This document shows, piece after piece, positions 17,222 to 64,000 of a stretch of DNA of 64,000 nucleotides. The DNA is taken from the sequence record NC_021531.1; one strand, given 5' to 3'. The position numbers and the translations under genes are program-made. The notes beneath the pieces were generated by a model. It made no database searches and had not been told where the DNA came from. It saw only the letters and a list, made by a program, of their open reading frames with translations. Within the stretch, counting starts at the first letter, position 1, and the number at the start of each line of letters is the position of its first letter.

Positions 17222-17737
17222 ATGAGTTACCGCCTAGACATGACCTTGCGACCCGAGGTCATCTTGCGTTCGTTAGTTAACTACCGTAACCACACGAACT
17301 ATAAAGAGAACCAATTAACATGGCACCCGAGTGGGGCGCGTGAACTCGAAAAACGCTTGCGTGATACGTTGGTACCGCGTTGCGATACTTACGCGTTGGC
17401 GAGCTTCTCACACGGTTATATCGGTTCGCGAAACTTTACCTACCTGCGTGTAGACCTCGACGAAATGTTCGACGGTCAGGTAGCGTACGCGCCTGCGAAT
17501 GAACACACAGAAACTGACGAGCTGCTGCCTTATATCCTCGCCGACCTCGGTGTTAGTCTGACCCGTAAAGACATTATCCCTCTGTTGATTCCTGAAGATG
17601 CAGAGGAAGTAGATGTTTTGATTGCGCCTCGTCATCTGACGTATAAAGGCAAGATTACGGTCTCGCTGACAGGTGGGAAGAAGCGTTTGGTGGAGCGCGT
17701 GTTGATTACTGACGTGGGTCCTTACCCAACTGCTTAA
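17222..17737 (+). CDS. virion structural protein; single-domain member of the tail paralogue family
   Basis: LGVSLTRKDII...TYKGKITV...LVERVLITD matches the N-domain and linker of the 52.7-64 kb paralogues. Confidence 0.65.
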   Translation: MSYRLDMTLRPEVILRSLVNYRNHTNYKENQLTWHPSGARELEKRLRDTLVPRCDTYALASFSHGYIGSRNFTYLRVDLDEMFDGQVAYAPANEHTETDELLPYILADLGVSLTRKDIIPLLIPEDAEEVDVLIAPRHLTYKGKITVSLTGGKKRLVERVLITDVGPYPTA

Positions 17738-60695: not shown

Positions 60696-60700
60696 CCGTG

Positions 60701-60730
60701 GGGAGAGGGGAAACCCTCTCCCTCTTTTTT
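60701..60730 (+). terminator. intrinsic terminator, GAAA loop
   Basis: gggagaggg-gaaa-ccctctccc plus T tract. Confidence 0.85.
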
Positions 60731-60743
60731 GAAGGGTATTGCA

Positions 60744-62060
60744 ATGGGACCTTTTAATTTACCCTCTGCGGAACTTGTTTGGCAACAGGTTAACCGGGAC
60801 AATCCTCAATTACCGTACCCCGTAAACGGGAAGAATGTGGTGTTATTGCAGGGCCCTTTTACAACCGGACTAGGGGACACTGGCCGAAACACGCGCATCA
60901 TTGTGAATGGGCAGGGTGCTCAGTATTCCGGTAAAACCACGTTGTGGTATGACCGCATTGCGTTAGGCAGTCTGTTCAGTGGCTTGCGTGTGCCAGTAAC
61001 GATTCCTTATCATGCGACCACGCTACGCGAAATTATCGCGTCGGTATCCGAGACATGCGGTGTGCTTTTAACCGCTGACGATTTAAATGCGCCAGATATG
61101 AACATTGGCGCAGTGACCGTCAACACCGCGAACTTAAACATCGCCGTAAAAGCAGAATGCCCTGCATATACGGGGGTGTTGCCGATAGTGTGGACACGTG
61201 AACCTCCGAGTTTGGTTGACTTATATGCAGACACAGAAACGACGGCGTGGGAGTTGCCTGATATTTACACGACTGTGTATCAGTTAGACTGGACCCCGTA
61301 TACCTCGCAGCTGACGGCGCTGGCCACGAATGCGGGACTTACTCGTAACTCAGCAGGGGTTATTAACTTCGTGGGCGCACTTGCGGCCTGGTCAGGCATT
61401 CCGTTTACCATCGGTACCGCCCCGAACGATGACCCTTACGACCTTTATGGGTACATTGCATCGCGCGACACTAATCCGGGTATTAATCCCGAGATGCGTG
61501 GTGAGTTTAACGGATGTCTTAAACTGACGCCGCCGGCGGCGCTGCTTAACATGCGTCGACCTTTATACCTTCACTACTCTCGCAAAGATGGTAAGGTCTA
61601 TTTGGCGCAGGAGGCCGATTTGCAGCGTTATGCAAATGCTAAGGGTATCGAAACGCCGAGTTTTACCGGTCCGGTGGTTGCTAATACCGGGAAGCCGGTG
61701 CTGGCACGAACGCCGTTGGCAGTTGCCGCCGACACGTTGTTAGGCACACCGTACGGTTCTTATATGCTGGGCAACGTGTACTGGCCACGGTTGATGCAAC
61801 ATGCATACCCTACACAGGCGCTATATGAGGCAGCGGCAGCTAAAAACCTCCTAACGATGGCCCTGTGTACGTTAGTAACGTTTGCTTCCACGACGGTTCC
61901 TGGGTTGGCGCGTAACGGCTATACAAGTTTGGCTGCAACGTCCACACAAGGGTGGAAGTTGACGCAATTCGTTTACTACGACAGTGATGCGGGTGGTTAT
62001 AAAACGTATGATCCGTTCAGTAAAACAGCACCGGTTAACTGGTACCCACCGTATGCTTGA
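60744..62060 (+). CDS. tail paralogue family protein 10 with extra C-terminal domain
   Basis: Family pattern up to PLYLHYS, then about 155 further residues. Confidence 0.75.
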   Translation: MGPFNLPSAELVWQQVNRDNPQLPYPVNGKNVVLLQGPFTTGLGDTGRNTRIIVNGQGAQYSGKTTLWYDRIALGSLFSGLRVPVTIPYHATTLREIIASVSETCGVLLTADDLNAPDMNIGAVTVNTANLNIAVKAECPAYTGVLPIVWTREPPSLVDLYADTETTAWELPDIYTTVYQLDWTPYTSQLTALATNAGLTRNSAGVINFVGALAAWSGIPFTIGTAPNDDPYDLYGYIASRDTNPGINPEMRGEFNGCLKLTPPAALLNMRRPLYLHYSRKDGKVYLAQEADLQRYANAKGIETPSFTGPVVANTGKPVLARTPLAVAADTLLGTPYGSYMLGNVYWPRLMQHAYPTQALYEAAAAKNLLTMALCTLVTFASTTVPGLARNGYTSLAATSTQGWKLTQFVYYDSDAGGYKTYDPFSKTAPVNWYPPYA

Positions 62061-62068
62061 GGTGAATC

Positions 62069-64000
62069 ATGGCATTTGAACCTGATTTAGTAACGGCCGT
62101 TATACGGTCGCTAAACCGGAAAAATTTAGTCCCCTCCGCTAGGGCCGCTAATCCGAATGATGTGCGGCTGGTATCGGTTGTTGTCCGTGATGAACGTACA
62201 CTCGATGTTACGGTGGAAGGCAAGTCAAATAAACCCACTTACGGCCGAATTACGGCACAAGTGTTTCGCCAAAACATTGCCGACTATTTTGCGAAGATAA
62301 CGCTAACGGCCATCCCGACAGTTACGAGCGTGCATAAACTGCTGCCCGAGTTGGCGACGTTGGTGGGGTTGAGTTTTTTGCCTGAGGACTTTGAAGACTT
62401 GCCAATCGTTTGGGTCGACAACAAAGCCAAAGTAACTTTCCAGTCAAAGCCGGGGAGTTATTTTTGGTACGGGTCTATAACACTGGATGTGGAAAACGGC
62501 GATGTGGATATCAACACCGTGTACACGTACAGCAACTATAACCCGACGGCAAAAACCCTGAACAAACAGCAGTGGGTTGATAACTACTCCGCGTTATGCA
62601 AACGAACACTCGATCTCAACAAAGTGGAAGTGAGTTTACCGCAGAAGCCGTCAGACCTCGGCATCAGTTCGGCGTATAACACCATTGTGACGTTAACTGC
62701 GAAACCGAACTCCGGACTGTTTGGTGTAAAATACGTACATTTCACCCGTATCAACCTTGCCAGCTTTGAAGGCCAAACAACCGCGGTTCCTGATGATTTC
62801 ACAGGTGACCTGTACGATGCATTAGCGACCGAAAATATTGGCTTTCGAACGTATCTTGATGTTAACGAGGTTGAGCGGTGCCCACTGGATACCAGTAGCT
62901 GGCCTATTGACGTTCAGTTGAAAGCGAAACCCGACTCTTACAGAGCGGTCGGTGTCGCGAATATCAAAGTCGGGCGTTATGCGGACGATACAAAATCTAT
63001 CACGATAGACTTCAATAGCAACAACATCGCAATGACGGCAACAACCATTGCTGACATTTGTAGGGCACGGGTAGCTAAGGCCGCGCAAGTTAATTTAACG
63101 ATTAACGTCGCGGCGGGTGTTTACCTGGTTGGTGCAAAAGTCACCGATTACGCGTTAACTATCCCGTATATGTCCCAGTATGCCAACGTAAATGTTGTGC
63201 TCAACAACCGAGGTTTCATTACAGGACGCGGTGCGCAGGGTTCGGATACGGGCTGGCCAAACGCCGCAGGTAACGGATTATTTATCGATCCTAAATTTAA
63301 AGGCAGTGTGGCCATCAATAATCTCGGGACAATCGCCGGTGGTGGTGGCGGTGGTGGGATGTCGTCGGCATTGAATTACGTCGGTGGTGGTGGCGGACAA
63401 CCTTTAGGGGCAGCCAGCAATACTAAAGATTCTGGTAACTTCTATGCTGGTCCTGCGGCGACCCTGACTGCCCCAGGCGCGAGTCGTGAAGTCTGGAGGT
63501 CAGATACACTCTACTATTTCGGTGGGGCAGGCGGTGGGCTTGGGCAGCCCGGTAAGATTCCCGGGCAGCGTAACGGAAACCCGCCTTATTACGCCGTGAA
63601 TCAAACCACAGCGCCCGGCGACCCTGGGAAGTCAGTTGTCGATACGGCAAATATCGCGACTTGGATTACGGCCGGCATCGTTATGCCGCCTGTGGTTGAT
63701 CAGCAGGAGTTGCTTAATCAGTGGTTGGATGTTCAAGATGCGAGGGTCGTTAGCGACACCACGGAATTGGATTTACTCGAAGCTGACGGTAAATTTATTG
63801 TTCAGTTAGATAGTAAAACCAATTTCTATACCGATCGCGACGGTTGGACTTTAGCGTCTAAGTTGCAGTGTTACGGACAAGTGTGGGGTCAACCGGTCGG
63901 TAGAGTATTCTACTCGCGTATTCCGGGCATGCTTCAGCTCGGTATGGAAAATGAAAACGTTTTCTATTACAACTACCGAAAAAACAACCGGGTGTATTTC
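62069..64000 (+). CDS. tail fibre/receptor-binding protein: two family N-domains plus gp38-like polyglycine adhesin (3'-truncated by the window; not in ORF track)
   Basis: GAGGTG SD; open frame from ATG 62069 to the window end (644 codons, no stop, translated by hand); contains GRGAQG, INNLGTIAGGGGGGG, GGGGGQPLG, TLTAPG, GGAGGGLGQPG. Confidence 0.85.
   Translation, partial: MAFEPDLVTAVIRSLNRKNLVPSARAANPNDVRLVSVVVRDERTLDVTVEGKSNKPTYGRITAQVFRQNIADYFAKITLTAIPTVTSVHKLLPELATLVGLSFLPEDFEDLPIVWVDNKAKVTFQSKPGSYFWYGSITLDVENGDVDINTVYTYSNYNPTAKTLNKQQWVDNYSALCKRTLDLNKVEVSLPQKPSDLGISSAYNTIVTLTAKPNSGLFGVKYVHFTRINLASFEGQTTAVPDDFTGDLYDALATENIGFRTYLDVNEVERCPLDTSSWPIDVQLKAKPDSYRAVGVANIKVGRYADDTKSITIDFNSNNIAMTATTIADICRARVAKAAQVNLTINVAAGVYLVGAKVTDYALTIPYMSQYANVNVVLNNRGFITGRGAQGSDTGWPNAAGNGLFIDPKFKGSVAINNLGTIAGGGGGGGMSSALNYVGGGGGQPLGAASNTKDSGNFYAGPAATLTAPGASREVWRSDTLYYFGGAGGGLGQPGKIPGQRNGNPPYYAVNQTTAPGDPGKSVVDTANIATWITAGIVMPPVVDQQELLNQWLDVQDARVVSDTTELDLLEADGKFIVQLDSKTNFYTDRDGWTLASKLQCYGQVWGQPVGRVFYSRIPGMLQLGMENENVFYYNYRKNNRVYF

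Follow-up and report, generated by a model that had tools for sequence, protein, structure and literature searches.

A T-even gp38-type polyglycine core on DUF7941 modules in CR5_144 of Cronobacter phage CR5, a candidate virion adhesin

CR5_144 and its gp38-type core

We analysed a window of 64,000 nucleotides, which corresponds to bases 62001-126000 of the Cronobacter phage CR5 genome (NC_021531 / JX094500; 223,989 bp; genus Derbicusvirus). The gene CR5_144 (YP_008125884.1) lies at its right end and encodes a protein of 722 amino acids (aa), which is labelled 'hypothetical protein' in GenBank. In this protein, two DUF7941 N-modules were followed by a GP38 core, corresponding to the rare host-binding core of the T-even adhesin gp38, and then by a C-terminal domain common with CR5_143 (Table 1). 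We considered this architecture and the gp38 homology, taken by themselves, to be close to certain. An original prediction, made from the letters of the window, had described an open reading frame (ORF) absent from the accompanying ORF track, with two N-domains, an internal gp38-type adhesin and a further domain. Most of this description was borne out. The ORF was absent from the track solely because CR5_144 crosses the window edge, and GenBank does annotate it. The two N-domains were the two DUF7941 N-modules, both above the Pfam cut-off. The gp38 core was internal, and the domain after it comprised about 180 aa.

The core was examined by sequence searches. The glycine-rich motifs quoted in the prediction were all found in the order claimed: NNRGFITGRGAQG, INNLGTIAGGGGGGG, GGGGGQPLG, TLTAPG, GGAGGGLGQPG, PGDPG and ATW..G. 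This series is far beyond chance. The match of Pfam GP38 (PF05268, gathering cut-off 25 bits) to CR5_144 had 86.2 bits and E 3.7e-24. It extended over aa 311-539 and included positions 2-214 of the 218-position profile. In a six-frame Pfam scan of the 224-kb CR5 genome, GP38 matched nowhere but in CR5_144 (89.8 bits). A phmmer search against PDB sequences returned gp38 proteins only (the PP01 gp38 fusion 9V85 and S16 gp38 6F45). A profile of six orthologous gp38 domains likewise gave two solved gp38 proteins only, with E values of 2.4e-8 and 2.7e-7. Against 5.8 billion proteins, this profile gave 43 matches down to E = 10, and PF05268 was present in all of them. The best of these matches were stand-alone proteins of 261-274 aa (E 2.5e-9 to 1e-5). 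The profile version was required, as a word-index search with a single gp38 domain as query gave nothing at E<=1e-3. A search of viral contigs for related loci gave zero confirmed relatives. In an alignment of 45 sequences (six jumbo-phage gp38 domains and 39 stand-alone GP38 relatives), the glycine columns of the core were invariant and the intervening segments varied. The possibility that the GP38 match was a low-complexity artefact was rejected on the basis of PF05268 in 43/43 matches, the aligned non-glycine positions and the specific fold match described below. Partial GP38-type glycine motifs were also observed beside PT-HINT/Hint domains in the metagenomic proteins P0030 and P0040, which is a non-tail-fibre setting.

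Structure prediction was performed to compare the core with gp38, a comparison that the original prediction had proposed. The AlphaFold2 model of aa 305-545, built with the 45-sequence alignment, showed the polyglycine sandwich with a predicted local distance difference test score (pLDDT) of 90.1 and a predicted template modelling (TM) score (pTM) of 0.88. Foldseek against the PDB gave three matches below 1e-3, all of them gp38: 9v85_C (1.2e-13; TM 0.70/0.75), 9v85_A and 6f45_D (9e-12). The next match was at E = 2. VIA-align superposed the model on PP01 gp38 (9v85_A) over 209 residues with Z 24.9 and a root-mean-square deviation (rmsd) of 2.5 A. For residues 41-249 of S16 gp38 (6f45_D), the values were Z 24.7 and rmsd 2.2 A over 207 residues, and the next match had Z 7.1. 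The predicted fold was taken as corroboration of gp38 homology and not as independent proof.

The solved gp38 proteins consist of an N-terminal three-helix domain, which attaches to the gp37 trimer through its tryptophans, a beta-helix and the polyglycine sandwich (PMC6851490, PMC12032242). The first of these parts was absent from CR5_144. Gp38_N (PF21721) gave no match in the whole protein at E<=1, nor in aa 250-330 at E<=10. It was present in the stand-alone relatives P0021 and P0025. Because PF21721 was unmatched and the structural alignment opened at S16 residue 41, we concluded that the gp37-docking device was replaced by the two DUF7941 modules. The assignment as a gp38-type adhesin therefore held for the core, and the loss of the attachment domain had been overlooked. 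The beta-helix of gp38 is built by both N- and C-terminal parts (PMC12032242). Since both chain ends thus pass via the beta-helix at the proximal end, an internal core would keep its distal loops unburied, and these loops may point outward despite the internal position.

CR5_144 was compared with T-even gp38 (S16, T2, T6, PP01; PF05268 + PF21721; 6F45, 9V85). Both have the beta-helix and three-layer polyglycine-II sandwich, and their glycine-rich motifs come in the same order and are interrupted by variable segments. Identity is 25-29% over ~207 superposed residues. However, T-even gp38 carries the three-helix gp37-attachment domain with its conserved Trp, which CR5_144 does not have. It is a separate monomer of ~260 aa that caps the gp37 fibre, whereas the CR5_144 core is internal and DUF7941-anchored, is followed by the extra 180-aa domain, belongs to a Chimalliviridae jumbo phage and has loops that are conserved among close relatives. 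A covalent fusion of a gp38-like region to a larger virion protein is also seen in the phrog_11439 tail-fibre proteins (E 4e-7). In these, a tail fibre of ~775 aa carries the region at its C-terminus, whereas in CR5_144 it is internal and on a non-fibre module.

DUF7941 modules, C-terminal domain and neighbouring genes

Both N-modules passed the curated PF25613 (DUF7941) cut-off of 27 bits in the six-frame genome scan, with 59.4 and 32.9 bits. In the full-length model, aa 1-142 matched the outer peripheral baseplate chain 9xqd_0 of phage phiKZ (Foldseek E 1.3e-6, probability 1.0; VIA Z 8.9, 133/150 residues). This chain was identified as phiKZ gp127 from its length of 150 residues and from a preprint on phage Goslar, according to which the 9XQD entry models residues 1-150 of gp127. 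The linker and C-domain of DUF7941 proteins were absent from CR5_144, as profile coverage ended at 163 (module 1) and 153 (module 2) of 276. In Salmonella phage SPN3US, gp141, gp143, gp145, gp154 and gp160 all carried PF25613, which identified the SPN3US 'paralog family B' as DUF7941.

CR5_144 resembled other DUF7941 proteins (Goslar gp22 and gp23, phiKZ gp126 and gp127, SPN3US gp138-154) in the sequence and fold of the N-module, the tandem gene cluster and a virion-associated orthologue. It differed from them in its tandem N-modules without linker or C-domain, its gp38 core, and a C-terminal domain common to CR5_143 only. The C-terminal domain and the end of CR5_143 were homologous, with an hhalign probability of 98.6 (E 6e-16, 107 columns). 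For aa 546-722, there was no Pfam match, no PDB sequence match in a profile search and nothing usable in ESM Atlas. A model of aa 556-680 (window 63734 onward) superposed on the LCCL domain 1JBI with Z 8.1 and rmsd 2.5 A over 98/100 residues at 14% identity. The LCCL-like fold was borderline and was kept as a lead only, seen in the model and not at the sequence level.

Table 1. Features of the CR5_144 region in window coordinates.
Feature	Position	Strand	Evidence and remarks
CR5_144	62069..64000, on to window-equivalent 64237 (genome 124069-126237)	+	ATG at 62069; stop 237 nt beyond window end; full-length match to phrog_19313
DUF7941 N-module 1, aa 1-160	62069..62548	+	PF25613, 59 bits, profile 16-163; Foldseek/VIA match to phiKZ 9xqd_0
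DUF7941 N-module 2, aa 161-304	62549..62980	+	PF25613, 33-35 bits, profile 23-153; blastp to CR5_136 and CR5_141 N-termini
gp38-type adhesin core, aa 305-545 (beta-helix and polyglycine-II sandwich, without Gp38_N)	62981..63703	+	PF05268; AlphaFold2 pLDDT 90.1; Foldseek; VIA
Glycine-rich motifs alternating with variable segments, aa 380-522	63206..63634	+	25% Gly; G7 and G5 runs; alignment of 45 sequences
Orphan C-terminal domain, aa 546-722 (start)	63704..64000, end outside window	+	hhalign to CR5_143 C-terminus; last residues ..LDGFKK
Shine-Dalgarno-like GAGGTG	62059..62064	+	4 nt 5' of CR5_144 ATG, overlaps CR5_143 stop codon; read directly in the sequence
CR5_143, 438-aa DUF7941 protein with CR5_144-like C-terminal domain	60744..62060	+	Candidate partner; co-swapped and co-duplicated with CR5_144
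Terminator-like GC hairpin and T-run, between CR5_142 and CR5_143	60700..60723	+	Consensus scan only

Several further features of the cluster were recorded. A ..LS...(E/T)LDGF tail ended two CR5 proteins only, CR5_144 (genome 126190-126234) and CR5_145 (L002:9735-9776). An NGELDGF end was present in SPN3US gp145, gp148, gp151 and most CR5_144 homologues, and not in SPN3US gp155. Tails of the LDGF type may be docking peptides. A different conserved end of the ..(F/I/L)ELV(E/LP) type was found on two non-DUF7941 proteins after each gene of ~500 aa (SPN3US gp146/147, 149/150 and 152/153; CR5_146 and CR5_147). The unit of three genes, a ~500-aa gene and two ELV-ended genes, occurred three times in SPN3US (L005) and once in CR5 (L002:9789-11723). 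A second strong terminator-like hairpin was located directly 3' of CR5_147 (L002:11736-11763), so that the two hairpins bracket genes 143-147. This suggests that these genes form their own transcription unit within the paralogue cluster. Two more short DUF7941 matches were found outside the tandem cluster, at window 17411-17734 (+, 48 bits) and in CR5_148 (genome 130073-130306, -, 28 bits).

Relatives and cassette exchange

The architecture of two DUF7941 modules and GP38 was kept in 8/8 full-length homologues at 34-95% identity, and the glycine motifs were invariant. It was present in 26 phage records, which comprised SPN3US-like Salmonella, E. coli and Proteus phages, Erwinia phage Phobos and CR5. 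The parts of CR5_144 gave different identities to these relatives. The N-modules were 31-32% identical to those of the CR5-like metagenomic phage L007 and 49-66% identical to SPN3US-type proteins. For the glycine region, the values were 92% and 38-43%, and for the C-domain, 79% and 22-24%, respectively. The segments between the glycine motifs differed strongly when the CR5 type was compared with the SPN3US type.

The border of this mosaic was located at the DNA level. The flanking genes of L007 were 79-95% identical to those of CR5, and CR5_143 there was just 33% identical. DNA identity between CR5 and L007 was 81-83% on both sides. In between, homology was undetectable over a stretch that opens ~120 nt inside gene 143 and closes at codon 343 of gene 144. 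From this, we concluded that CR5_143 and the first 343 residues of CR5_144 were exchanged as one 2.2-kb block. This block (window 60866-63099; L002:4866-7099) resembles a recombination cassette, with its right edge within the gp38 beta-helix. The relative L008 (4676-11681) carried two consecutive pairs, each with a 143-like gene (436 and 439 aa) and then a DUF7941-GP38 fusion (706 and 735 aa). Its two fusion proteins were 37% identical to each other. The joint exchange and the pair duplication suggest that CR5_143 and CR5_144 act together. Contiguity alone could also have produced both patterns.

The gp38 cores of the six jumbo phages grouped as a single clan (SH-aLRT 100) in an unrooted quick tree, where a long branch separated them from the 39 stand-alone proteins. 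This topology is consistent with one old fusion event. The original prediction had called the core horizontally captured and had proposed a comparison of the locus in close relatives. Capture remained plausible with one clan on a long branch, and the direction of transfer is not given by such a tree. Among the close relatives, the domain order was kept, and the glycine region was 92-99% identical while the N-modules were exchanged.

Virion location and host recognition

The orthologue of CR5_144 in SPN3US is gp155 (SPN3US_0155), which has ~41% identity and the same order of DUF7941 x2 and GP38. Mass spectrometry has been reported for purified tailless heads of 255(am107), an SPN3US tail-tube mutant, and gp155 was assigned to the head by the authors (PMC10052503). 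gp155 (78.3 kDa) gave 199, 218 and 209 peptide-spectrum matches (PSMs) in wild-type virions and 140, 130 and 128 in the tailless heads (PMC10052503 Table S2). The normalised ratio of heads to wild type from this table was 0.89 for gp155, as against <0.07 for tail proteins. It was 1.1-1.7 for the family B members of the gp138-154 cluster, gp83 and gp160, and 1.39 for the major capsid protein. The sheath, tube, tape measure and fibre candidates gp168-170 gave 0.004-0.03. By our own rough PSM-per-kDa scaling, calibrated on the capsid, portal, sheath and tube proteins of the same table, gp155 was present in roughly 8-46 copies per virion, or ~1.1 x gp154, the orthologue of CR5_143. PHROGs places these DUF7941 proteins in the category head and packaging. 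SPN3US gp237, a family B protein in the 2017 paper, had a ratio of 0.06 (a 16-fold drop), alone among the tabled B members (PMC10052503 Table S2). gp237 is a possible tail-side anchor for family B.

DUF7941 modules build filaments and are specific to nucleus-forming jumbo phages. The purified Goslar DUF7941 protein gp22 forms filaments, and in the predicted assembly the linker and C-domain of one subunit dock head-to-tail on the N-module of the next (preprint 10.64898/2026.04.21.720040). Goslar gp86, gp92 and gp161 combine DUF7941 with carbohydrate-binding, glycoside-hydrolase or leucine-rich repeat domains, and a baseplate-anchored DUF7941 'fibre cloud' for host recognition was proposed in the same preprint. 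CR5_144 resembles these three proteins in design, with a DUF7941 anchor ahead of a host-recognition domain. It differs in that the effector is a T-even-type polyglycine adhesin. The preprint contains zero occurrences of gp38, adhesin or polyglycine, and SPN3US is unmentioned.

Based on the above results, we propose that CR5_144 is a virion adhesin borne by DUF7941 filaments, to which we assign a probability of about 0.6. CR5_144 would be a CR5 particle protein in which a T-even-type gp38 receptor-binding core is carried on DUF7941 modules and not on a gp37 fibre tip. Its two N-modules would act as docking units, to which other DUF7941 subunits would bind by their linker and C-domain. Because it has two N-modules and neither a linker nor a C-domain, CR5_144 would be an end or branch subunit of the filament, probably alongside CR5_143. 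When phiKZ was re-fitted in the Goslar preprint, the N-module of gp127 lay proximally, with its linker and C-domain extending to gp126 (10.64898/2026.04.21.720040). By this polarity, subunits with N-modules only would be placed at the distal end. The gp38 glycine sandwich and its variable loops would be displayed outward and bind a host surface component. Long flexible filaments tipped with adhesin would suit a flagella-targeting phage, and CR5 may depend on flagella.

Several points weighed against this proposal. The virion evidence came from the orthologue gp155 and not from CR5 itself. Family B proteins were earlier proposed as internal head proteins and marked 'ejection?' (PMC5694885), and an adhesin role would be pointless if the location were inside the head. 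In the full-length AlphaFold2 model, for which 8 homologues were used, the glycine region stayed unmodelled, with aa 427-522 at pLDDT <35. The domain model was not independent of homology, as gp38 relatives were in its alignment and 6F45 is older than the AlphaFold training. The conserved glycine region on exchanged N-modules among CR5-like phages is the reverse of what is seen in T-even phages, where the anchor is conserved and the loops vary. The reported SPN3US receptor is the flagellum (PMC11428620), and the characterised gp38 receptors are mostly porins (OmpA, OmpC, OmpF, Tsx), with lipopolysaccharide in some cases (PMC12032242).

The original prediction read the protein as a tail paralogue, of baseplate or fibre, that captured T-even gp38 and acts as a host-range determinant binding an outer-membrane protein. 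This reading had support from phiKZ, where gp127 is in the outer baseplate at the end of the gp139 band in each star lobe (9XQD; PMC13250141), and from the baseplate-anchored filaments proposed in Goslar. The paralogue cluster adjoins tail-fibre chaperone genes, gp237 shows a tail-like ratio, and the receptors of characterised gp38 adhesins include porins. However, the term tail paralogue was not supported. DUF7941 is family B, and gp155, the family B members of gp138-154, gp83 and gp160 stayed at 0.9-1.7 in tailless heads while tail proteins went down 15- to 200-fold. The transfer direction was unsettled in the unrooted tree, and flagella, not a porin, are the reported SPN3US receptor. We consider this alternative unlikely. 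A tail location is not established, as the direct data for the SPN3US/CR5 clade say that the protein stays with the head and one phiKZ member is at the baseplate rim. The protein may accordingly be an adhesin sited off the tail. The more specific proposal, that the SPN3US/CR5 type carries its DUF7941 filaments with a T-even-type polyglycine adhesin on the head and not on the baseplate, is put forward only tentatively.

The head assignment by mass spectrometry (PMC10052503) also fits an internal head protein that is packaged and perhaps ejected. The glycine sandwich would then have another use, for example as a rigid scaffold or, once injected, in binding an inner target. The tag 'Head ejection?' was given to abundant family B members (PMC5694885), and the glycine region was strongly conserved among CR5-like phages. 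However, purified DUF7941 forms long filaments, and the sugar-binding or sugar-cleaving domains of the relatives are sensible only outside the capsid. CR5_144 has also kept a complete adhesin core with aromatic-rich loops. The protein was not among the head proteins reported to be cleaved by the prohead protease, although not all packaged head proteins are cleaved (PMC5694885). These results made an internal location distinctly improbable. It is very improbable that the gp38 core is a decaying or purely structural remnant serving as a mere spacer without a binding role. Although the canonical attachment domain was lost, the frame is intact, and all glycine motifs are unchanged across the 8 homologues, of which the most distant has 34% identity. 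In addition, one relative carries the gene in duplicate, and the protein of the orthologue was detected in virions.

The gp38 polyglycine-II sandwich is treated as a hallmark of Straboviridae long-tail-fibre tips. In the literature, no description of a gp38 domain in SPN3US gp155 or CR5_144 was found, and the 'gp38' of SPN3US papers is an unrelated SPN3US gene. Public protein collections already list the DUF7941/GP38 pair of Pfam domains as a precomputed annotation, and the automatic label 'Phage tail fiber adhesin Gp38' is attached to one SPFM19 record. The novelty lies in the anchor of the gp38 core, which differs from the known one and may not be on the tail. In nucleus-forming jumbo phages, the core was grafted on another anchoring system, with the fibre-docking domain cleanly replaced. 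It is a natural example of adhesin cores moving between unrelated attachment scaffolds.

CR5_144 supports the recent proposal of host recognition by DUF7941 filaments. It also brings out a conflict between sources, since SPN3US mass spectrometry puts DUF7941 proteins with the head and the Goslar preprint puts them at the baseplate. If the filaments are attached to the head, the capsid itself would be equipped to catch hosts at long range, perhaps by their flagella or cell surface, and CR5_143 with the front part of CR5_144 would be an exchangeable connector cassette. CR5 and SPN3US-like Salmonella phages are used in biocontrol work. For these phages, CR5_144 and its orthologues provide a concrete and tractable candidate receptor-binding protein.

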